This document shows positions 3,001-63,788 of a stretch of DNA of 64,000 nt, piece after piece. Both the position numbers and the translations under genes were made by a program. The notes under the pieces were generated by a model that was given only the letters and a program-made list of their open reading frames with translations, did not search any database and was not told the origin of the DNA. Each line of letters starts with the position of its first letter. The stretch's first letter is position 1. Source of the DNA: Octopus bimaculoides (taxonomy: Eukaryota); the NCBI RefSeq assembly GCF_001194135.2, contig NC_068990.1, forward strand, positions 29,571,209 through 29,635,208, in the 5' to 3' direction.

Positions 3001-4020
3001 TCTGAATTCAGATTCTGCCGAGGTGGACTTTACCTGTCATCCATTTGGGGGTGAGTAAAATAAGCACCAGTGAGTGCTGGGGGGGTCAATGTAATTGACT
3101 AACCCCATCATCATCATCATTGTTTAACATCCATTTTCCATGCTGGCATGGGTTGGACAGTTTAACTGAGGTCTGGAGAGCCAGGAGGCTGCACCTCAGA
3201 CATTGTCCTTCTGTCATGTTGTATGCTAAATAAATCTGGCCACAGATTTATAAGAGGCTAATCTACTTTTTTGTCTGGTGCAGTAGCCATCTTTATTTAT
3301 TTATTGCCCCTGAGTAGATTTAGGATCGAAATTGTTCTATCCTTCTAACCATTCCCTCTGATTAGGATTATATATTATCATTCCCATTTTAAGAAGGTGG
3401 AGTCGAGTATTTCAGCTGCTATTTCTTGCTGATTAACTGACCATGTCGAGGCTCTCAGTCATTAGCTTGTGCTGACGTAAATGATGTATGTGAAAAATTG
3501 CAAAGAAATTGGAATTTATCCCTTGGAAGAAAGAAAGCGAATAAGTTCTGGCAGTTGTCTGTGATTTTTGCAAAGGCACCTGATTTAGTGGTCAGTGTAT
3601 TCCCCTCAAAGTTGTAAGATTGTAAGTTCAATACCCAGTGGCACAATGTGTCCTTCAGCAAGGCATTCTATTTCACATTACTTCAGTGCACTCATCTGGA
3701 AAAAACGTGTGTACCTGTAATTCAACCTTGTCACATTTTGTGTCATGTTGAATCTCACTGAGAACAATGTTATGGTTATGCATGTCTGTGGAGTGCTCAG
3801 CCACTTGTACATTAATTTCACAAGCAGGCCATTCTGTTGATTGGGTCAATTGGAACCCTTGTTATCGTGACCAACGGAGTGTCAGGTAACAGCTGTGAAC
3901 ATATTTTAGTCTTATTAGATTTTATCTGTGAACAATGAAACAGACAGTTCTATATTTAAGAGATGAGGAATTATGTACATTATTTACATTTGATGGATAT
4001 TTGTCCTCATCTTGTTTGTT

Positions 4021-4066
4021 AACACAACATTTCGGCTGATATACCTTCCAGCCTTCATCAGGTGGC
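4021..4066 (-). ncRNA. Minimal type-I hammerhead ribozyme motif (HH-1)
   Basis: GCCAC CUGAUGA A GGCUG-gaagguauau-CAGCC GAAA UGU U GUGUU; one distal stem I mismatch. Confidence 0.65.
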
Positions 4067-4113
4067 TTGGGGAAATTTCAAGCCTGAGTTCTCATTCTTA
4101 AGGTATTTTTTGA

Positions 4114-4163
<50 letters not shown>

Positions 4164-4349
4164 TCACTGCTTGGAATTGAACTCAGAATCTTGGGGTTAG
4201 TAGCCCGTGTTCTTAACCACTATGCCATATGCCCGTGGGCTACTAACCCCAAGATTCTGAGTTCAGTTCCAAGTAGTGACCTGAATAATAATAATAATAA
4301 CATCGAAAAATACCTTAGGAATGAGAACCCAAGTTTGAAATTTCCCCAA

Positions 4350-4395
4350 GACACCTGATGAAGGCTGGAGGGTATATCAGCTGAAACATTGTGCT
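4350..4395 (+). ncRNA. Damaged hammerhead motif (HH-1)
   Basis: GACAC CUGAUGA A GGCUG...CAGCU GAAA CAU U GUGCU; C-A mismatch in stem III and one stem I mismatch. Confidence 0.5.
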
Positions 4396-5335
4396 AATAA
4401 CAAACAAGATGAGGACAAATATCCATCAAATGTAAATAATGTAAATGAAAGAGACTTCTCAAACTTGTTGAACAATGGATGACTGTTAAAAAGAAAAAAG
4501 TGTTACGAAGAATTTTATGCATTTTAATTTGAACAATGAACTAAGGGAAATAATTCAAATGGACCACTGACATGAAATTGGATAAGCCAAATAGGCACGT
4601 AGGTGGGTGAGTGGTAATATATTGACTGCCATATTTATAATAGGTTCTAAATGGATTTGAAGTTGGAGAAATAGAATAGAACTTTGATAGCAGTTGTTAA
4701 CACCTTTGTTAACATGTGTCACATTGTCACATGAAACTCTCCCCCACCGCACTCCTATGCCATTGTAGTTCCTTTTCAACTCCTTCATGTCACACATCAT
4801 CCCAACCATGCCACACGCTACTCCCACCCACTGTTTTTTTTTCTTTTGTTTTGACAACCAACTTCTCTTCTGCACCCTTTGCAGTCTTTGCTCCTGTTTA
4901 TTACACGTTAAAGAAACAAGCTGTCGTGTAAAAAACAAAAAACGTGTGTGTGTGTGTGTGTGTGTATGGTAATTTCTGTCCTTCTCTATGTTCTCAAACT
5001 TCCATGTTGGCCATTTCTGCTTCTGCTTATCACAGTAGGTTTATATAATCAGAGTGCTGGCCAACGGACCCTACCGTTGCAGTTATCATCATCATTTAAC
5101 GTCTGTTTCCCTTGCTGGCATGGGTTAGACAGTTCGACTGAAAACTGGTAAGCTGGGAACCCTGCTGTACTTTTACACCACAACTTTCTCTCACTCTTTC
5201 TTCCTGTTCCTGTTTCTGTATTTCAAAGGGCCAGCTTCTCAGCCACTGGCACGTTAATTTCACGAGCAGGCTGTTCCGTTGATCGGATCAACTGGAACCC
5301 TCGACGTCATAAGCGACGGAGTGCCACAATATATA

Positions 5336-21712: not shown

Positions 21713-24216
21713 AATCCAAAAAAAAGCAAAGAACAAATACAAAAACACAACACCATAAGGATGTGGTACAAGTAAAGTATTAGCAAACATTCAAGGAAGG
21801 AAAGAAAGGTGGTTTTACGTTTCGAGCAAAGCTCTTCTTCAGAAACAGGAGACGGAGGAAAGTCTAATAGAGAAGGATGACGGAGGAAAAAAAATTGCCA
21901 ACGATTCACATGTGGTTACATTTTGAAATGACCAGAAGGGAATATCATCATCATCATCATCATCGTTTAATGTCTACTTTCCATGCTGGCATGGGTTGGA
22001 CGGTTTGACTGAGGACTGGTGAGCCAGAAGGCTGCACCAGGTTCCAATCTGATCTGGCAAAGTTTCTACAGCTGAATGCCCTTCGTAATGCCAACTATTC
22101 TGAGAGTGTAGTGGGTCCTTTTACGTGCCACCAGAACGAGGGCCAGTCAGGCAGTACTGGCATCAACCACACTCAAATGTTATTTTTCACATGCCACCGG
22201 CACGTGTGCTGGTAAGGCGACACTGGCAACAATCACACTCAAATGGTGCTTTTTACGTGCCACTGGCACAGGAGCCAATCCATGGCCCTGGCAATGATCA
22301 TGCTCAGATGTGCTTTTAACATTCCACTGGCACNNNNNNNNNNTATATATATATATATATATATGAATTAAATATTTCCTTCTCAAGGCATGCCAGGTTC
22401 ATGAGGGCCAGTTTCCTGGCTTCAGTGTCGTATAAATTCCCCCACCTGGATGGGACGCCAGTCCAGTCACAGGATGACTCACTTTTACCTGGTGAGTGGA
22501 CTGCAGCAACATGAAATGAAGTATTTTGCTCAAGGACACAACACATCACCTGGTCCAGGAATCCAAGCCCCTAACCACTAAGCGACATACCTCCATCTCA
22601 TCATCATCATTTAACGTCTGTTGTCCATGCTGGCATGTTGGAAGGCTGCACCAGGATCCAGTGAATTTGGCATGGTTTTCTACAGCTGGGTGCCCTTTCT
22701 AATGCCAACCACTCCGAGAGTGTAATGGGTGCTTTTACATACCACCAGCACGAGTGCCATTTGCGTGACACTGGTATCTGCTATGAGTGCGATTTTGCTT
22801 GGCTTGATGGGTCTTCTTCTCAAGCACGACATAATGCCAAAGGTCCCAGTCATTGCCTCCGTAAGGCCCATCCCATGGCACGTAAATAGCACCCACTACA
22901 CTCTCAGAATGGTTGGCATTAGGAAGGGCATCCAGCTGTAGAAGAAACCTTCCCAAATCAGATTGGAGCTTGGTGCAGCCTCCTGGCTTCCCAGTCCTCA
23001 GTCAAACCATCCAACCCATGCCAGCATGGAAAACGGCAATCCCACCCATGCTTGCATGGAAGGTGGACGTTAAACGATGATGATGATGATATAAATATTA
23101 TTTGTATGAATGTCCATCTGACCCATGCAAGCATGGATAAGTAGACATTAGATTATGATGATGATGGTGATTATAGAAAGAGCTTTTGGCCTGTCTGTTT
23201 CCATGTGCAAACATCACGATAGTCTTTTATAAACCACAAATCTTTTGAAAAACTGGAATCAGTCTTTTATAGATGGTTTGGAGACTGTTTGTGTACCACT
23301 ACTTTTGTAATGGTTTTTATCTTATATGTTTCCTATTCGGAAATAGATAATAAATATATTTTACTTTTGAAGTAGGAATCTATATTGATAAAGATGTCAC
23401 TTATAACTTACTTATAAGTGTTATCATTATACGTAAATCCTGACTCCAGCTACATAAACGCCATAGCAAGAAATATATACTCTGAAATGCTAACAGACAT
23501 TTTATGCGTGCATGTATGTTGAAGATAAATAAATTTGTGTTCTTTTAACTGCTATAAAAAAATACAGTTTCATAATTGCAGAAATAAATTTCATTAACAA
23601 GTTGAAGAATGTGAAGAAAGAGAAAATAATTACTACATTAGTTTATTTATGTACATTTAGCATTTATAATACAATTGGAAAGTAAAGTCATTTTGTCATA
23701 GAAAATTACAACTTAAAATTCACACTAAGCTAATCCTTCATACTAACTATTAGAGTTCACAACAATTCAAATAAGTCTTGTTGGATTTAGGTCATAGACA
23801 TGGCATAAAAAATAGCCAATATCTCAAGGAGTGAATGTTGTGGAGTTTAGTAACATCCTACAAACACTGAGTAATTTCCCCAAAAAATCAGCAGTTTTTA
23901 TAACTGCTCATATCTGAATTCTAAGAACTGTATTTCGTGAAAGAATTCTTTGACAAAAGTTTAGAATTCGTATATGGGCAGTAATTTTAACCAATGGGAT
24001 TACCAACAATTATGCTTGTTCGGGCAAACGACCATTACGTCATATTGCCACCTTTTTTCACTTGCTACAAGTCTAAAAATATTTTCATTAAAGGTAAACT
24101 AAAGTTTGCTTTACTCAATTTTCTTTCTAATGCCATTTTTGTTGTTTCTTGAAATCAAAACTGATTTACATTCGTAATTTTTTAATTACAAAATTTTTTT
24201 CTTTTGTCTCTTCCAG

Positions 24217-28686: not shown

Positions 28687-31156
28687 TTCTCTGTTGGACA
28701 AGAACAATGGATACTTGACTGGCTCTCCATCGGTTACGAAGACATCTGTTCCAGTTGATCTGGAACAGCTTCCTCATGAAATTAACTTGCAAGTGGCTGA
28801 GCGCTCCACAGATATGCGTCCCCTTAACATAGTTCTCAGGGAGATTCAGTGTGACATGTGACAAGGCTGGCCCCTTTGTATTACAGGTACAACTCCTGCC
28901 AGTTGAACTGGAGCAACATGAAATAAAGTATCTTGCTCAAGGGCACTGCTGGAGATTGAACTCTCAACCTTACTATTGTGAGCCAAATACTCTTACCACT
29001 AAGCTATGTGTCTTCACCAGGGACACCTAAAAAACACTCAGCTTCACGACAAAGGGATCTCTCTCTCTGAAGATCTCTGATGGCAATCCCTCATCTATAA
29101 CGTACCCAAAGCAACACCCCAAACACTAAGATTCTTTGTTCTAGTCAGAAAATATGCTTCCCTGGTTAGTTGTTGATCTTCTGCATGGCCCCACTGCAAC
29201 CCCATATTAAAGTATTTCTCACCCATCTGTAACCGTGCTGCTGTCGCACACAAACCTTTGGGACCACATTCAGCTGGTTCTCAACCATTTTAATATCCCG
29301 GTCAGATCCAAAAACCTGGATTTTTTTTAGGGAGTCAAACAAAAAAAAGTAAAACAAATCAATTAAAGAAAAATTTATATTTAGAGAGGAAAGCCCATTA
29401 AGAGCCACACGAGGCCCAGAGATCCACAGTATAAACTCTAAACTTCTTGTGTCATTGCTATATTGATCTTTACTCTGCTCCTCTCAACTAGAAAGCTACA
29501 TCCATCATCCAGTCTTCAGCAGTCATCATTGTCTCTATTTTTTCTGTTTCTTTTATTTATTTTTTTATTTTTTATTTTTTTGTCATTCTTACTGTATTTC
29601 ATGTCACAAATCCTGTATTTAATATTTTACCTTAATTGTTCCCTGTCAGAACTGCAACCCTCAAATATTTCTTTAAACCCCACCCCCANNNNNNNNNNNN
29701 NNNNNNNNNNNNNNNNNNNNNNNNNNNNNNNNNNNNNNNNNNNNNNNNNNNNNNNNNNNNNNNNNNNNNNNNNNNNNNATTGATTATCAATCACTTTGAT
29801 CTCATCTGAGGAATGGTTTATCAAAGTCATGGACACTGTTTTTTCCGCTACTAAGTTGTTAATAATAATAATAATAATAATAACAAGAGCACTCAGAGAG
29901 CGCAAACTTCCATCAAGGCAACACCAATGTCCTCTCAACGATTAGCCTGAGATGATTTTTAATATGAGAATGTCTGAAATAGACTCGACTGTTCTCACAA
30001 ACGAGAACACTAAAAATGAACCTGACTGTTCTCAAAAATTAAGTAAAAAAACTGAAAAGATGAGGGGCAAAGATGATTTGGGTGGTATTTGAACTCAGAG
30101 CATTTTGTCTGATGTGCTAATGACTCCACTTGCCACCTTAAATGATGATAATGATCCGTTTTACTGTAGTCACAAGGCCTGAAATTTCGTGGGAGGCAGG
30201 GACAGTCAATTAGATCAACCCCAGTACTCAACTGGTACTTAATTTATCAACTCCGAAAGGATGAAAGATAAAGTCGACCTCTTTGGAATTTGAACTCAGG
30301 AGGTCAAAGCAGACAAAATACTGCTAAGCATTTCGCCCAGTGTGCTAACAATTCTGCCAGCTCACTGCCTTGATAATAATAATAATAGTAAAAACGGTTT
30401 CAAATTCTGGCACAAGGCCAGCAACTTCAGAGGAGTGTCCAAGTTGATTACATCGACACCCAGTACTCAACTGGTACTTATTTTGTCTATCCCGAAAGGA
30501 TGAAAGGTTAAGTTAACCTTGGCAGAATTTGAACTCAGAACGTAAAGGATAGACGAAATGCTACTAAGCATTTTGCTCAGCATGCTAATGGTTCTGCTAG
30601 CTCAGCCCCTTAATAATCCTTTGTGTTATAGGCACAAGGCCTGAAATTTGGGGGAGGGGGATGTTCGATTACATCGACCCCAGTGTTTCACTGGTACTTA
30701 ATTTATCGACCCCGAAAGGATGAAAGGTAAAAATCGACCTTGGCAGCATTTGAACTCAGAACATAAAGTCAGAAGAAATGCTCCTAAACATTATGTCCGG
30801 TGCAGTAACAATTCTGCGAGCTTGCCATCATCATCATCATCATTTAACATCCATTTTCTATGCTAGCATGGGTTGGACGGTTTGACTCCGATCTGCAAAG
30901 CCAGCGGCAGCACCAGGCTCCAATATGATTTGGCATGGTTCCATTGGCTGGATGCCTTTCTTAACGCCAACCACTCTGAGAGTGTAGTGGGTCCGTTTTA
31001 CGTACCACCAGCACAGGAACCAGTCAGGTGGGCCTGACATCGATCATGTTTGGATAGTGCTTTCTACATGCCACCGGCATGGGAGCCAGTCAGTGGGTAC
31101 TGGCATTGGCCATATGCAGATGGTGCTTTTTACATGCCACCAACACAGAAGCCATA

Positions 31157-31481
31157 TGTTGAACTTTGATTTCAAGAGAAGTCTAAGGCACATAAAATAT
31201 GCAGTGATGACCTTGTCTTTCATTTCTCTGTGCAAGATATTGTCCAGCTCCAGGACCCCAAAGTAATTATACCTGTCATCATCTGGGTCTTCCATTCTCT
31301 CTCCGTTTGGCAATTCTATGCCCCTACAATTTACTCTTTTCTCCCACTTCAAAGTGAGCACTGCACACTTCGAGATACCGAATTCCATCTTTATATCCTT
31401 GCTGCACATCTGCGCAATTTTAACCAGCTTCTCCATTTCAGGCTCTGTTTTCGCAAACAATTTTAAATCATCCATGAAGAG
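31157..31481 (-). mobile_element. Non-LTR retrotransposon RT fragment, R4/Dong-like
   Basis: LFMDDLKLFAK...MEFGISKCAVL...IELPNGE...YNYFGVLELDNILHREMKDKV...SKFN; truncated by a SINE. Confidence 0.8.
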
Positions 31482-43262: not shown

Positions 43263-43671
43263 TTGATATTGTATGGACTAAGATCCCTGTTGACAAGCCA
43301 CTGGTATTTATAGTGTTAAACACTTTCGGTATGCAAATTAGGGACTCCTTCACAGAGTAACTGCTGCATTTGTTAAGTATATAAACAGTTTGGCTGCTTG
43401 TTTCTCTGGAGACTGTCAGAATGATGTGGACGCCTCTGATGAGAAGCCAATAAGGTTCGAAAATCAATTTTTTTCAGTTTGCAGAGAAATGGCTAAAATT
43501 TGCCCTGTTTATAATTATTCCATATGTTACATATAAGATAGACTTCTTTAGTTTCCATTTACCAATTTCATTCATAAGACTAATGTTGTCATGAGGCTTT
43601 TGTAGAAGACACTTGCCCATCCTGCTAGAAATAACAGCTGAATCTCATGCACATTTCACTCTACAGTCTTA
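43263..43671 (+). mobile_element. Family HH-2 copy A (pLTR-like, damaged hammerhead core at 43436-43462)
   Basis: Direct repeat of 46018-46456 and inverted repeat of 45686-45943. Confidence 0.75.
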
Positions 43672-43903: not shown

Positions 43904-44181
43904 ACAGTTCTATATTTGAGAGATGAGGAATTATTTACATTTGATGGACATTTGTCCTCATCTTGTTTGTTGTTAACACAACATTTCGGCTGATATACCC
44001 TCCAGCCTTCATCAGGTGTCTTGGGGAAATTTCAAACCTGGGTTCTCATTCCTAAGGTATTTTTCAATGTTATTATTATTATTCAAGTTACTGCTGGAAT
44101 CGAACTCAGAATCTTGGGGTTAGTAGCCCGTGCTCTTAACCACTACGCCAAGATGAGGACAAATATCCGTGAAATGTAAAT
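43904..44181 (-). mobile_element. Family HH-1 locus 2: full element on - (43904-44150) plus ~30-bp inverted 3' fragment (44151-44181)
   Basis: Same sequence as 3944-4234; head tggcgtagtggttaagagcacgggctactaacc; directly abutted on + by agatgaggacaaatatccgtgaaatgtaaat. Confidence 0.85.
43975..44020 (-). ncRNA. Minimal type-I hammerhead ribozyme motif (HH-1), best-preserved copy
   Basis: GACAC CUGAUGA A GGCUG-gaggguauau-CAGCC GAAA UGU U GUGUU; stem I GACAC/GUGUU and stem II GGCUG/CAGCC fully paired. Confidence 0.72.
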
Positions 44182-44961: not shown

Positions 44962-45685
44962 GTATTTCATTTGTTTTTATTTTTTCTTGTGGTTTTCATC
45001 GTCGTCATCATCATCGTTTAACAATTGTTTTCCATACTGGCATGGATGGTTTGACTGAGGCTGCACCAGGCTCCAATCTGATCTGGTAAGGTTTCTACAG
45101 CTGGATGCCCTTCCTAACGCCAACCATTCCGAGAGTGTAGTGGGTACTTTTTACATGCCACCAGCACTGGGGCCAGTCAGGTGGCTCTGGCATCGACCAC
45201 ACTCAAATGGTTTTTTTTATGTGCCACTAGCACGGGAGAGAGTCAGGCGGCACTGGCATCTTGTTTTATATTACAATTGAGGAAAGAATGACATTGTTGC
45301 TTGCAGGTATCCAATGTGTCAAGCACTGGCTCATTACATGTCTTGCAGCAAGAGTGAGAACAAAGGATTATCCATAACTCATTGTCGTCGTTGTCGTTTA
45401 ACATCCACTTTTCCATGTGCGCATGGGTCAGAAGAATTTTCTACCTGTTCCAGTGCCGCATAAAAAGTATCTGTACCGATGCCACGGTAAAAGCTCCTCT
45501 GCTGGTGTTATGTCAAAATCACTGGTACTGGTGCCATACAAAAAGCATCCAGTGCACTCTGTAAAGTGGTGGGCATTTTCTGCCAAAATGGAACCTGGTC
45601 TGACTCTCAGCCTTGCCAACTCCTGTCAAACTGTCCAACCCATGCCAGCAGTGAAAACAGAGCTTAAATGATGATTATGATGATA

Positions 45686-46456
45686 GGGCAAGTTTTAGCC
45701 ATTTCTCCACTGAAAAAAATGATGAACAACCTTAATTGATTTTCGAACCTTATTGGGTTCTCATCAGAGGCGTCTACATCATTCTGACAGTCTCCAGAGA
45801 AACAAGCAGCCAAACTGTTTATATACTCAACAAATGCAGCAGTTTCTCTATGAAGGAGTCCCTAATTTGCATACCGAAAGTGTTTAACACTCTATAAACA
45901 CCAGGGGCTTGTCAACAGGGATCTTTGTCCACACAGTATCAACATATGATATAATAAATATGTAACATATGGTATAATTCATCATTTTTTCAGTCTGCAT
46001 ATAAATTATATCATACCTTGATACTGTGTGGATTAAGATCCCTGTTGACAGGCCACTGGTATTTATAGAGTTTTAAACACTTTCAGTATGCAAATTAGGG
46101 ACTCCTTCATAGAGAAACTGCTGCATTTGTTGAGTATATAAACAGTTTGGCTGATTGTTTCTCTGGAGACTGTCAGAATGATGTAGATGCCTCTGATGAG
46201 AACCCAATAAGGTTTGAAAATTAATTTTTTTAGTCTGCAGAGAAATGGCTAAAATTTTCCATGTTTATAATTATACCATATGTTACATATAGGATAGACT
46301 TTTTTTATAATGTTACATATAGGATAGACTTCTTTGGTTTCCAGTTACCAATTTCATTCATAAGGCTAATGTTGTCATGAGGCTTTTGTAGAAGACACTT
46401 GCCCATCCTGCTAGAAATAACAGCTAAATCTCATGCACATCTCACTCTACAGTCTT
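45686..46456. mobile_element. Family HH-2 copies B (-, 45686-45943) and C (+, 46018-46456), head-to-head
   Basis: ~250-bp inverted arms around a ~75-bp spacer that itself contains fragments of the element. Confidence 0.78.
45724..45774 (-). ncRNA. Minimal type-I hammerhead ribozyme motif (HH-2, copy B)
   Basis: GACGCCU CUGAUGA GAACC-caauaa-GGUUC GAA AAUCAAUU A AGGUUGUUC; perfect 5-bp stem II; stem I GCCU/AGGU. Confidence 0.68.
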
Positions 46457-49339: not shown

Positions 49340-50030
49340 CAGACTGGAGCCTGGTGTTGCCATCCGGTTTCACCAGTCCTCAGTCAAATCGTCCAACCCA
49401 TGCTAGCATGGAAAGCGGACGTTAAACGATGATGATGATGATGATTATTATTATTATTATTATTATTATTACATAAAGTGACAAGCTAGCAGAATCTTTA
49501 GCATGCTGGGCAAGATGCTTAATGGCATTTCATCCATTAATCACTCCTTCTTGTTAAAGGTCTTATCTTTTGTATCTGATATTTTCTTCACTTGAGAACG
49601 CGTTACAAAAGGGTTCTGAGTTCAAATGCTGCTGAAGTCGACTTTGTTACAATAGGGTTTAAAAACAGCTGAGCCAATGAGAGAGTCATTACCTGGTCAC
49701 TTCTCTTGCTAGAAATAACAACCAAGTATCCTTCAAATCATACACTGTTATCATTTTCATCATTTCACATCCATCTTCCATGCTGGCATGGGTTGGACAG
49801 TTCGACGGGAACTGGCAAGCCAGAGGACTGCACCAAGCTCCACTGTCTGTTTCGGCATGATTTCTATGGCTGGATGCCCTTCCTAATGCCAACCACTTTA
49901 CAAAGTGTACTGAATGCATTTTATGTGGCACCAGCTCTGACAAGGTCTGTTATGATATGGCTTTTCGAAACAAAGATACATTACATTATTTACATTTGAC
50001 GGGTATTTGTCCTCATCTTGTTTGTTGTTT

Positions 50031-50076
50031 AACATAACATTTCGGCTGATATTCCTTCCAGCCTTCATCAGGTATC
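50031..50076 (-). ncRNA. Hammerhead motif (HH-1) with stem I mismatch
   Basis: GAUAC CUGAUGA A GGCUG...CAGCC GAAA UGU U AUGUU; core intact, first stem I pair is C-A. Confidence 0.55.
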
Positions 50077-50333
50077 TTGGGGAAATTTCGAATCTGGGTT
50101 CTCATTTCAAAGGTATTTTTTGATGTTATTATTACTATTATTATTATTATCATTCAGGTCAGTGTCTGGAATCAAACTTGGCATATGGTGTAGTGGTTAA
50201 GAGCGCGGGCTACTAACCCCAAGATTCCAAGTTCGATTCCAGGCAGTGACCTGAATAATAATAATAATAATAATGATAATAATAACATCGAAAAAGCCTT
50301 AGGAATGAGAACCCAGGTTCGAAATTTCCCCAA

Positions 50334-50379
50334 GACACCTGATGAAGGCTGGAGGGTGTATCAGCCAAAACATTGTGTT
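50334..50379 (+). ncRNA. Inactivated hammerhead motif (HH-1), G12A
   Basis: GACAC CUGAUGA A GGCUG...CAGCC AAAA CAU U GUGUU; GAAA has become AAAA. Confidence 0.5.
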
Positions 50380-50799
50380 AACAATAAACAAGATGAGGAC
50401 ATATATCAGTCAAATGTAAATAATGAACAGACCAATGATCTAAAGCATTCCAAATGTGACCATCAAATGTAAATAATCTGCATAATTTCTCATCTCTTAG
50501 ATATAGAACTATAAAGATAAATTAGTCTGAATCTTTTGAAGAATTAGTGAAGAAATCTCAGACATGGAAGTAACTCCTAGAATTGGAAGGTCTTTAAGTG
50601 AAGGTAGCAGAAACTAAAGTTTTAGTAAAACCAAAGCCAGGATTTTATGTTGTGAAGTCATTATATCCAGCATAATGTAAAGAAGCTGGAGTTCCATAAA
50701 GTATCTCCAATATAAACCATGATGAAGGGTAGAGAAGAAGAGGTGGAGTGGCTTTGTAGGTTGGCTGGCAGAGAAGGGCTTCTTGTGGGCTAATGGTTA

Positions 50800-62602: not shown

Positions 62603-63788
62603 CCACTGAAGTTGATTTTGCCTTCTATCCTTTTGGGATCAATAAAATAAGTCTCAGTTGAGCGCTGGGGTTGCTCATCTAACCCCTGCCCCCAAAATTT
62701 CAGGCCTTGTGCCTATATAATAGAAAAGACTATTATGATGTTACCTGTCTTATGATGGGTAACTTCAAAAGTATATTTTTGCCACCCTGGGTAATATCAG
62801 GAATTTCTTGGTGCTTATACAAAACAGTGAACTGAAAACCAATTTTCAAGAGAAAAGAATGTATTTATTAAACAATAATATTTATCTCCACTTAAAAATG
62901 GGAGTTGTGTTAGAACACAAAATACTGTGTAATTTACGAGAGAAAACTCTCATTATTGACTTGTGGTGCATATAAGCACTCATGTTTATGTTGCTAGTGA
63001 GCGATAATCATCAGCTACTGCTGCCAGAACATGTGATTTTGGCTTCTAAGGCTAGACATAACAGTGATTTCTCTATTAGCAATATATATAGAGATTTTGT
63101 TGTGTCTGGGGAGAGTCTGTCTGTTTGAATATTTTATTAATTAACATATTTACTGATTCAATTTCCACTCATTTATTATATTTCTTTCTTAAATTTTCGT
63201 TGCTTCTTGCAACCTCTTCAATATATATGTGTGTGTATATATATAAACAAAATATATATATATAATCACAGTGTTTATTTAGACAGTTGTGTTGCAGATA
63301 GTGATGGGTTTATTAAAAAATGATTATCATTACCATCATCATCATCATCATCATCATCATCGTTTAATGTCTGCTTTCCATGCTGGCATGGGTTGGATGG
63401 TTTGACTTAGGACTGGCGAGCCAGAAAGCTGCACCAGGCTCCAATCTGAACTGGCAAAGTTTCTACAGCTGGATGCCCTTCCTAACGTCAACCACTCCGA
63501 GAGTGTAGTGGGTGCTTTTACATGCCACCGGCACAAGTTGAATTTCAGAACATTCCAAAAAAATCATATCGCACCACAGCCTCATGCTGATTGGTCGATT
63601 TATGGGCCAATCACGTGAGACTGTGGTGGTTCACTAGTGTCTGGCTGAGTATCCAGCAGTAAGGTTTCAAATCACTGCTACAATGTGAAATGTTTTGTAG
63701 AATGTTTTGTAAATTTCTCCTTTTATCCTTTCTAATATTTGGGTACTTATTTTCCTCTTCTTCTTCTTCTGCTTATCATCATCATCAG

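Follow-up and report, generated by a model that had tools for sequence, protein, structure and literature searches.

Short interspersed elements (SINEs) are normally defined by their dependence on long interspersed elements (LINEs). Here we analyze a repeat of ~280 bp in a 64,000-nt stretch of the Octopus bimaculoides genome (the window; RefSeq assembly GCF_001194135.2, contig NC_068990.1, positions 29,571,209 to 29,635,208), which an earlier note, made from the sequence alone, had taken for a SINE that acquired the 3' module of a Penelope-like element (PLE) together with its hammerhead ribozyme. Minimal hammerheads of PLEs are reportedly treated in Lunse et al. 2017 as well, and Ferbeyre et al. 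1998 and Laha et al. 2000 are said to deal with the SMalpha and Sjalpha hammerhead retroposons of Schistosoma.

The closest described motifs are the minimal hammerheads of PLEs (Cervera & de la Pena, 2014, PMC4209133; Poseidon_Ac, Frangieh et al., 2024, PMC11167929). These are type I, with a CUGANGA core, one unpaired nucleotide, a G10.1-C11.1 pair, a 6-bp helix II, a short helix I, GAAA-CG-U-H and, instead of a loop 3, a palindrome able to pair only intermolecularly, all of which they share with the octopus motif, and the octopus element likewise ends ~50 and 82 nt past the ribozyme cut. They are weak in vitro and dependent on dimerization or protein (PMC4209133, PMC11167929), dispersed minimal hammerheads have been ascribed to 'truncated PLEs' (PMC4209133), and Schistosoma was already known to have pairs of motifs on opposite strands, separated by a few hundred bp. 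They lie, however, in the pseudo-long terminal repeat (pseudo-LTR) of an element that encodes a reverse transcriptase (RT) and GIY-YIG protein, whereas the octopus motif lies in a ~280-bp unit headed by an A and a B box. SMalpha and Sjalpha (PMC6765202, PMC6155905, PMC8490949) are also short, non-autonomous, apparently transcribed by RNA polymerase III (Pol III), and equipped with a type-I hammerhead. Theirs is the canonical fast ribozyme with loop-loop contacts, found largely in tandem, satellite-like repeats, while the octopus element has the minimal PLE variant, dispersed inverted pairs and a PLE tail, with no relationship between the sequences.

Animal non-LTR retrozymes (Cervera & de la Pena, 2020; Li, Clavereau & Pollet, 2026, 10.64898/2026.07.22.740005) are non-coding, carry hammerheads, are proposed to be PLE-dependent, and have been argued to be non-autonomous PLE derivatives (bioRxiv 10.64898/2026.07.22.740005). 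They are defined by head-to-tail tandems that give circular RNAs, unlike the copies in the window, which bear a Pol III-type head and are not arranged in tandem. Classical tRNA-derived SINEs, among them OR1, OR2 and OK of octopus (Ohshima & Okada, 1994; CORE-SINEs, PMC4824008), share with our element the A/B-box head, the modular sequence of head, body and tail, target-site duplications (TSDs) and a length of ~300 bp, but the octopus element has neither a LINE-type 3' end nor an A-rich or microsatellite tail, and its insertions are PLE-like. Finally, the TRIMp3 elements Helenus and Ajax (Kojima, 2024, PMC10886601) combine Pol III heads derived from small RNAs (tRNA or 5S) with the cis-elements of a retroelement that is not a LINE; their partner is an LTR element instead of a PLE, and they have no ribozyme. 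Since Pol III-transcribed, SINE-like elements with a hammerhead (SMalpha/Sjalpha, PMC6765202) and retrozymes argued to be PLE derivatives (10.64898/2026.07.22.740005) are already known, the octopus element extends known kinds, and the earlier note overstated its case in calling the combination undescribed. The full-text literature on hammerheads, SINEs, Penelope and octopus yielded no tRNA-headed SINE with a PLE module; Repbase, Dfam and SINEBase were not covered by that search, and the family may already bear a name there. PLEs are active in octopus, with 30 recently active Penelope families in O. vulgaris, and octopus genomes contain ~900 unclassified SINE families (PMC13282606).

We read the repeat as a family of short (~280 bp), non-autonomous octopus retroelements that consist of a tRNA-related A/B-box head, an (AAT)n linker and a ~128-nt 3' module of PLE type, inserted in PLE style, and we put the probability of this reading at about 70%. 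BLAST with positions 50170-50520 against the window recovered, (AAT)n microsatellites aside, three loci only, where five arms of the element lie at the positions given earlier. The arms had been counted as five copies; they exist, but they are not independent and make up three head-to-head inverted pairs. Their alignment gave a consensus of 278 nt, in which the head (GGCATATGGCGTAGTGGTTAAGAGCACGGGCTACTAACCCCAAGATTCTGAGTTCGATTCCAAGCAGTGACC) is followed by the (AAT)n linker, a body of ~50 nt, the hammerhead and 82 more nt that end in ...TATAGAACTGT, so that every part named at the outset (A box, B box, linker, ribozyme and terminus) is present. The 3' module comprises a conserved leader of ~25 nt, the minimal type-I hammerhead, a 9-bp hairpin and two alternative 3' ends.

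With its defined 5' end, short length, lack of coding capacity and 12-nt TSDs at two of the three loci, the element resembles a SINE. Its 3' end, on the other hand, is the unique sequence ...TATAGAACTGT, free of any A-rich, poly(A) or microsatellite tail, and neither a LINE-derived 3' end of the kind found in tRNA-derived SINEs nor a CORE domain was seen. BLAST of a copy against the window did not find the tail elsewhere, and no head-to-tail tandem of the element occurs in the window. The surroundings have 38% G+C, assembly gaps with 1548 N and many other SINE families. One very abundant family ends in (GAT)n, at times followed by (TAT)n (...CCATGCTGGCATGGGTTGGACGG...), for example at 21944-22014, 49380-49461 and 63341-63411; several further tRNA-like families are present, and the PLE-type element differs from these by the absence of a microsatellite tail.

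At each of the three loci, a full or nearly full primary arm is joined head to head, without filler, to an inverted secondary arm. Two of the primary arms begin at the identical nucleotide (GGCATATGG) and the third, at locus 2, begins 7 nt further in, while the secondary arms are 5'-truncated at consensus positions ~27 (locus 1), ~50 (locus 3) and ~215 (locus 2). A tail of 30-32 nt is found at every locus on one arm only, the primary one. The fixed tail (...tatagaactgt) that had been attributed to all copies is thus a property of the three primary arms, and the two long secondary arms end 30-32 nt earlier, at ...AAATAATG(TA). Both outer ends of each insertion are thus 3' ends of the element, long on the primary and short on the inverted secondary arm. 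TSDs of 12 nt with one mismatch enclose the whole pair at loci 1 and 3. Divergence from the consensus was 0.034 and 0.052 for the two arms of locus 1, and 0.094 and 0.088 for those of locus 3; this match within a locus fits one insertion event per pair. Arm identity within loci as against between loci, unlike divergence from the consensus, did not discriminate.

An inverted, 5'-truncated copy that abuts the 5' end of the main copy, together with a tail of 30-40 nt at one end only, is characteristic of PLEs (Craig et al., 2021, PMC8557442). The first of these features is seen at all three loci and in related loci from other assemblies (L004, L011, L003, L009 and L010, described below). The one-ended tail is seen at all three loci (30-32 nt), and measures ~36 nt in L003, L009 and L010.

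We considered two explanations of the pairs that do without a PLE. An ordinary tRNA-derived SINE mobilized by a LINE, whose hammerhead is a chance motif or a relic and whose inverted pairs stem from twin priming or rearrangement, would sit well with the abundance of conventional SINEs and the LINE RT fragment in the window, with the silence of Rfam on the hammerhead, and with the failure to find a PLE nearby. We regard it as improbable. Twin priming inverts a 5' segment and does not yield two opposite copies of one 3' region, whereas here both outer ends are 3' ends, with termini 30-32 nt apart at all three loci, and the two-ended pattern returns in L003, L009 and L010. The element lacks the poly(A) or microsatellite tail of the neighboring SINEs and shares its own tail with nothing else in the window; the strict ribozyme descriptor used below found no match in 1500 shuffles, and distant relatives keep the motif with an intact CpG and a compensatory change. 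A foldback element or miniature inverted-repeat element (MITE) with terminal inverted repeats, moved at the DNA level by a transposase, would produce a long inverted repeat with short direct repeats at its flanks, as each locus in fact displays. Yet the arms are unequal, one being extended by 30-32 nt, and the inner junction is different at every locus; a 12-bp TSD is atypical of cut-and-paste families, the relatives have direct tandem units beside the inverted copy, and the element is polar (head, linker, ribozyme). This explanation appears to us the least likely of those considered.

Coordinates of the element and its parts in the window, and of the tandem arrays in related loci
Feature	Position	Strand	Description
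Locus 1 TSDs	AATGAAACAGAC 3934-3945; AATGAAAGAGAC 4444-4455		12 nt, 1 mismatch
Locus 1 primary full-length arm	3944-4233	-	Tail 3944-3975; hammerhead 4021-4066; B box 4173-4183; A box 4217-4227; 5' end GGCATATGG at 4233
Locus 1 secondary arm	4234-4443	+	Truncated at consensus ~27; hammerhead 4350-4395; short end ...AAATAATGTA
Locus 2 primary arm	43904-44149	-	Head complete but for its first 7 nt; tail present; best-preserved hammerhead 43975-44020
Locus 2 secondary arm	44150-44181	+	Severe 5'-truncation, starts AAGATGAGGAC, 15 nt 3' of the cut site; short end
Locus 3 left TSD	49972-49983		AAAGATACATTA; 12-nt match with 1 mismatch to 50513-50524
Locus 3 secondary arm	49984-50179	-	Truncated inside the head at consensus ~50; short end ...AAATAATG, no tail; hammerhead 50031-50076
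Locus 3 primary full-length arm	50180-50512	+	Head 50180-50252; (AAT)n 50254-50285; body 50286-50333; hammerhead 50334-50379
Locus 3 candidate Pol III promoter, primary arm	50186-50240	+	A box TGGTGTAGTGG 50186-50196; B box AGTTCGATTCC 50230-50240; 33 nt between
Locus 3 primary-arm hammerhead	50334-50379	+	GACAC-CUGAUGA-A-GGCUGG-(8-nt loop)-UCAGCC-AAAA-CA-U-U/GUGUU; predicted cut (/) after 50374
Locus 3 primary arm, 3' part	50391-50399, 50487-50495 (hairpin strands)	+	52-nt insertion 50426-50477; tail to 50512
Locus 3 right TSD	50513-50524		AAAGATAAATTA; partner of 49972-49983
Tandem 129-nt arrays	L003 10121-10378; L009 10154-10507; L010 10156-10374		

The geometry of the 3' module resembles that of Poseidon_Ac, a PLE whose protein cleaves and extends both DNA strands in vitro (Frangieh et al., 2024, PMC11167929). 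Reverse transcription of Poseidon_Ac begins internally at two adjacent sites, the tail being the stretch between them, and its ribozyme, which is assisted by protein, is not required for insertion in vitro (PMC11167929). The ribozyme cuts at nt 29 of the open reading frame (ORF) and reverse transcription starts at nt 111-118, that is, 82-89 nt past the cut (PMC11167929). In the octopus element, the cut predicted after GUU lies 50-53 nt from the short end and 82 nt from the long end. The Poseidon_Ac ribozyme (ACCU-CUGAGGA-U-GCCUGC...GUGGGC-GAAA-CG-U-C/AGG, cut at the slash; PMC11167929 File S1) and that of the element have an identical layout, including the loopless ACGU. A 9-bp hairpin in the module (AGAUGAGGA...UCCUCAUCU) holds the short end in its loop and takes its 3' strand from the tail; the stem in the distant relatives is AGAUGAAG/CUUCGUCU, with one double change from G-C to A-U. 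Alignment of Poseidon_Ac with the module of L003 was weak but collinear (8 of 300 shuffles reached its score), and placed TTCGACAACA at the RT start of Poseidon_Ac opposite TTTAGACAACA at the long end of L003.

The 52-nt insertion in the primary arm of locus 3 sits exactly at the position of the short end. Its first 34 nt precede a second CCATCAAATGTAAATAAT that is closer to the consensus than the upstream copy. The insertion may have arisen at the internal RT start site through a restart, a switch of template or the making of a tiny tandem copy.

We then examined the ribozyme motif itself. A 32-nt hammerhead pattern with up to 3 mismatches matched the window 5 times and 100 shuffles not once. 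A strict descriptor of minimal hammerheads, which parses both the tested Poseidon_Ac ribozyme and the element consensus, matched the window at 3 sites and had no match in 1500 Markov shuffles of it; when a 5-bp helix I was demanded, one copy of the element passed, that of the primary arm of locus 2 (43975-44020, minus strand). The consensus motif is GACAC-CTGATGA-A-GGCTGG-AGGGTATA-TCAGCC-GAAA-CG-T-T-GTGTT. Helix I (GACAC/GUGUU) and helix II (GGCUGG/UCAGCC) pair in the consensus as had been claimed, except that helix II has 6 bp and not 5, with the G10.1-C11.1 pair and a single bulged A after A9, as in PLE ribozymes. The CUGAUGA core is intact in all five arms and H17 is U throughout, while GAAA is intact in four, the exception being a G12A change at 50367 attributable to decay.

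At the site of helix III, three arms have UG, two have CA, and none has ACGU. UG and CA are the two decay products of a CpG, which makes CG the likely ancestral state. The ancestral stem ACGU postulated in the earlier note, although absent from the window, is indeed intact in relatives, namely in L003 (4 copies) and on the minus strand of L004; L008 has ACGC, and Poseidon_Ac carries the same GAAACGUC as the intact relatives. The motif can thus be read as having the loopless, palindromic helix III of the dimer type. PLE hammerheads have further hallmarks outside the descriptor of Cervera & de la Pena (2014, PMC4209133), namely an extra nucleotide between A9 and 10.1 and the G10.1-C11.1 pair, as well as a palindromic 15.2-16.2 without loop 3 and a short helix I beside a long helix II (PMC4209133). 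All four of these hallmarks are present in the element consensus.

Across 14 sequences, 82% of cells in the alignment were paired, as against 30-52% in slid controls, and one double change each was found in helix I, helix II and the 3' hairpin; the 14 sequences represent few families, and the pairing fell short of significance against shuffles (see below). Minimum-free-energy folding of the whole element and of its dimer was uninformative for an intermolecular helix of 4 bp, and the exact hammerhead pattern had 0 matches in metagenome and viral contigs.

The head provides candidate elements of an internal Pol III promoter. The consensus A box TGGCGTAGTGG, as in the arm of locus 2, fits TRGCNNAGTGG, the B box AGTTCGATTCC fits GGTTCGANNCC at 10 of 11 positions, and the two are spaced by 33-34 nt, as in tRNA-like promoters. 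The A box begins 7 nt from the 5' end of the element. No TTTT occurs on the sense strand of the consensus, whereas TTTTT is present on the antisense strand. The T arm and variable loop of the head presumably resemble those of tRNA-Arg(ACG). The constant 5' end, together with a second, independent head on the same module (see below), suggests that the element would be transcribed by Pol III from this head.

Relatives of the element in other assemblies fall into an octopus-like and a distant group. Members of the first, in the Logan assemblies SRR11869384-94, have the same head, (AAT)n linker and body; L004 and L011 are again head-to-head inverted pairs, and L011 has the same head as the element in the window. 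The distant group, in ENA assembly ERZ21867824 (L003, L009 and L010), has no other repeats in common with the window. Alignment of the octopus and L003 modules gave a z of ~12 (0 of 300 shuffles), and the units of this group are ~80-83% identical to the octopus module over ~80 nt. The module of this group (CUGAAGA-A-GGCCGG...UCGGCC-GAAACGUU...) has an intact core and ACGU, and its helix II, GGCCGG/UCGGCC as against GGCUGG/UCAGCC in octopus, differs by a compensatory change. Among the relatives, N7 varies (CUGAAGA or CUGACGA), as does the bulged nucleotide (A, U or G).

In ERZ21867824, the module forms seamless tandem units of 129 nt (hammerhead plus 84 nt) with an inverted copy in front, a retrozyme-like pattern in which the head-to-tail tandems that define retrozymes are present. 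Each of the complexes in L003, L009 and L010 nonetheless has one long and one short end, and those of L009 and L010 have TSDs of 12-19 nt. The inverted copy in L003 is a full element with a different head, whose A- and B-box-like motifs are TGGCGTAACGG and GGTTCAATTCT. The junction of inverted and direct copies lies at the 5' end of the head in L003 (10000-10040). In L009 (10130-10165) it coincides exactly with the base of helix II of the hammerhead (..CCTCCGGCC/GAAATG.., junction at the slash), and looks as if nascent cDNA had snapped back on the helix II hairpin. An RT of 800 aa in L009 belongs to an RTE-type LINE.

These tandems bear on a further explanation, that the repeat is derived from a PLE and is not a SINE. 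It would consist of pseudo-LTR-like terminal fragments, or be a retrozyme-type derivative, with fortuitous A and B boxes, transcription by Pol II or read-through, and perhaps rolling-circle reverse transcription of an RNA that the hammerhead had processed, in circular form. The view of animal retrozymes as PLE derivatives lends itself to this, as do the seamless 129-nt tandems in L003, L009 and L010, the negative results of the tRNA finder and of the Rfam tRNA model, and the position of the A box only 7 nt from the 5' end. We consider it unlikely, though the best of the alternatives, since the 5' ends of the primary arms agree, exactly in two of them (GGCATATGG) and to within 7 nt in the third, while the secondary arms are truncated anywhere. 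In addition, L011 repeats the same head in another dataset, L003 joins a second and different A/B-box head to a homologous module, the octopus element has no head-to-tail tandem in the window, and its sense strand is free of TTTT.

Several observations weigh against the reading of the repeat as a tRNA-headed element with a PLE module. ARAGORN found no tRNA in the window, in the consensus head (at relaxed thresholds) or in the related loci, the Rfam tRNA model at E<=10 matched neither the head nor the intact relatives, and the acceptor and anticodon stems of the head do not pair. No convincing TSD was found at locus 2. Four of the five copies in the window carry a single decay mutation that would disable or weaken the ribozyme, and the paired fraction reported above was reached by 55 of 500 shuffles, which is not significant, the covariation amounting to about three events from few families. 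Efficient cleavage would sever the head from the module at which reverse transcription is initiated, and the Poseidon_Ac hammerhead is dispensable for insertion in vitro. A tblastn search with the Poseidon_Ac protein against the window, L001, L003, L009 and L010 found no PLE, and the sense frames of the module, when used as queries against protein sets, led to no RT-containing protein. Thus, the search for an autonomous PLE sharing the module, which the earlier note had called for, came up empty in the window, the fetched loci and the module-frame protein searches. Of its proposal that a SINE took over a PLE module with its ribozyme, this is the part left without a counterpart; the Pol III-type head, the PLE-type insertion signature, the Poseidon_Ac-like ribozyme and spacing, and the relatives with intact ACGU speak in its favor.

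The covariance-model check suggested in the same note also failed. No Rfam hammerhead model (Hammerhead_1, _3, _II, HH9, HH10) matched the window at its gathering score, and at E<=10 none matched either of the two long loci, the best hammerhead taken by itself or the intact units of L003, a further point on the negative side; the Rfam searches returned only chance microRNA and small nucleolar RNA matches. We attribute this to a limit of the models, which appear not to cover a loopless helix III. As the Rfam 15 models return nothing for minimal hammerheads even when these are intact, any genome annotation that relies on Rfam would systematically miss the class. For the giant squid, 235 Hammerhead_1 matches are on record.

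The mechanism that we propose for the PLE-dependent SINE starts with transcription of the unit by Pol III from its head. A PLE RT/GIY-YIG protein, supplied in trans, would bind the hairpin and tail region of the 3' module and nick both strands of an AT-rich target, as the in vitro behavior of Poseidon_Ac suggests. Reverse transcription would start internally, with the distal site serving one strand and the proximal site the other, and the two cDNAs would be joined head to head at a variable point. The hammerhead would have been inherited with the module, and its cut after GUU would, by comparison with PLE ribozymes, be expected only in a dimer or with the help of a protein. It may be unneeded for insertion, a passenger that is perhaps regulated or else vestigial; the tandem relatives may use it as a processing site that yields unit-length RNA.

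A broader proposal, which we offer tentatively and at somewhat less than even odds, is that there is an as yet undescribed class of Pol III SINEs parasitizing PLEs. One conserved PLE cis-module of ~128 nt (leader, minimal hammerhead, hairpin and two RT start sites) would have received different tRNA-like heads on separate occasions, in two or more distant invertebrate lineages, and would by itself be sufficient for double-ended, internally initiated reverse transcription and able to spread as 129-nt tandems. If so, PLEs would be a third class of partner for SINE-type elements, after LINEs and the LTR retroelements on which TRIMp3 depends. Such a class would account for part of the thousands of 'orphan' minimal hammerheads in invertebrate genomes, and for part of the hundreds of 'unclassified SINE' families of octopus. 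The ~128-nt module would be a naturally minimized template, apparently recognized by a PLE RT and including both internal start sites, and could be used as a substrate for studying PLE integration, whose mechanism is poorly understood, and the role of the ribozyme. There are also consequences for annotation: Rfam misses intact ribozymes of this kind, and the module enters gene predictions in the form of small 'proteins' and, in at least one case, of an annotated exon.

Two database proteins of Octopus bimaculoides, recovered with the sense frames of the module as queries, are translations of the element (89% and 70% identity). An exhaustive HMMER search with one of the octopus proteins gave 31 hits, of which ~28 are small ORFs translating the same module; P0026 (2124 aa) was rejected as a relative, being a spurious repeat protein. 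In all, ~30 clusters of module translations are present in public protein sets (P0001, P0013-P0042; for example A0A0L8FV75_OCTBM). Once its CpGs are restored, a frame of 50 codons, MRTQVRNFPKTPDEGWRVYQPKRCVNNKQDEDKYPSNVNNVHNSSSLKYRT, stays open from an ATG in the body right up to the last nucleotides of the 3' end (e.g. 50303-50512). The open frames are probably a matter of ascertainment, only open copies being predicted as proteins. The antisense ORF of the SINE gave no candidates in a set of 5.8 billion proteins.

One annotated protein, P0002 (O. bimaculoides 'dystrobrevin beta isoform X1', GCA_001194135.2), comes from a gene that spans 132 kb. Its first ~33 residues (..GEGWRVYQPKCCVNNKQDEDKYPSK) translate the hammerhead and the sequence downstream of it, corresponding for example to 50339-50420. 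The match stops at the element's AAATGTAAAT, whose GT may be a splice donor, which suggests that the module has been exonized as an alternative first exon of this dystrobrevin beta isoform.

Other repeats in the window include a LINE-type RT fragment, encoded by an ORF of 143 aa at 31044-31475 (minus strand; MDDLKLFAKTEPEMEKLVKIAQMCSKDIKMEFGISKCAVL...). Its best database relatives, from other organisms, are 46-48% identical, and it did not match the PLE protein of Poseidon_Ac. A third candidate minimal hammerhead lies at 21806-21848 on the minus strand (GTTT-CTGAAGA-A-GAGC-TTT-GCTC-GAAA-CG-T-A/AAAC, cut at the slash), ~115 nt upstream of a (CA)n tract. It is single-copy, with no second copy in the window or the fetched loci, has an intact ACGT, and passes the strict descriptor (0 of 1500 shuffles).

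An unrelated repeat, family 'B', occurs at 43284-43535 (+), 45680-45962 (-) and 45998-46290 (+), and has the core GCCT-CTGATGA-GAACC-CAATAA-GGTTC-GAAA-ATCAATT. Its 4-bp helix I is complete in one copy only, which makes the ribozyme call weaker. Two of the copies form a head-to-head inverted pair, with arms of 229 nt that are 93% complementary and a spacer of 35 nt, and a 3' extension of ~29 nt is present on one arm only, which is a PLE-type signature.

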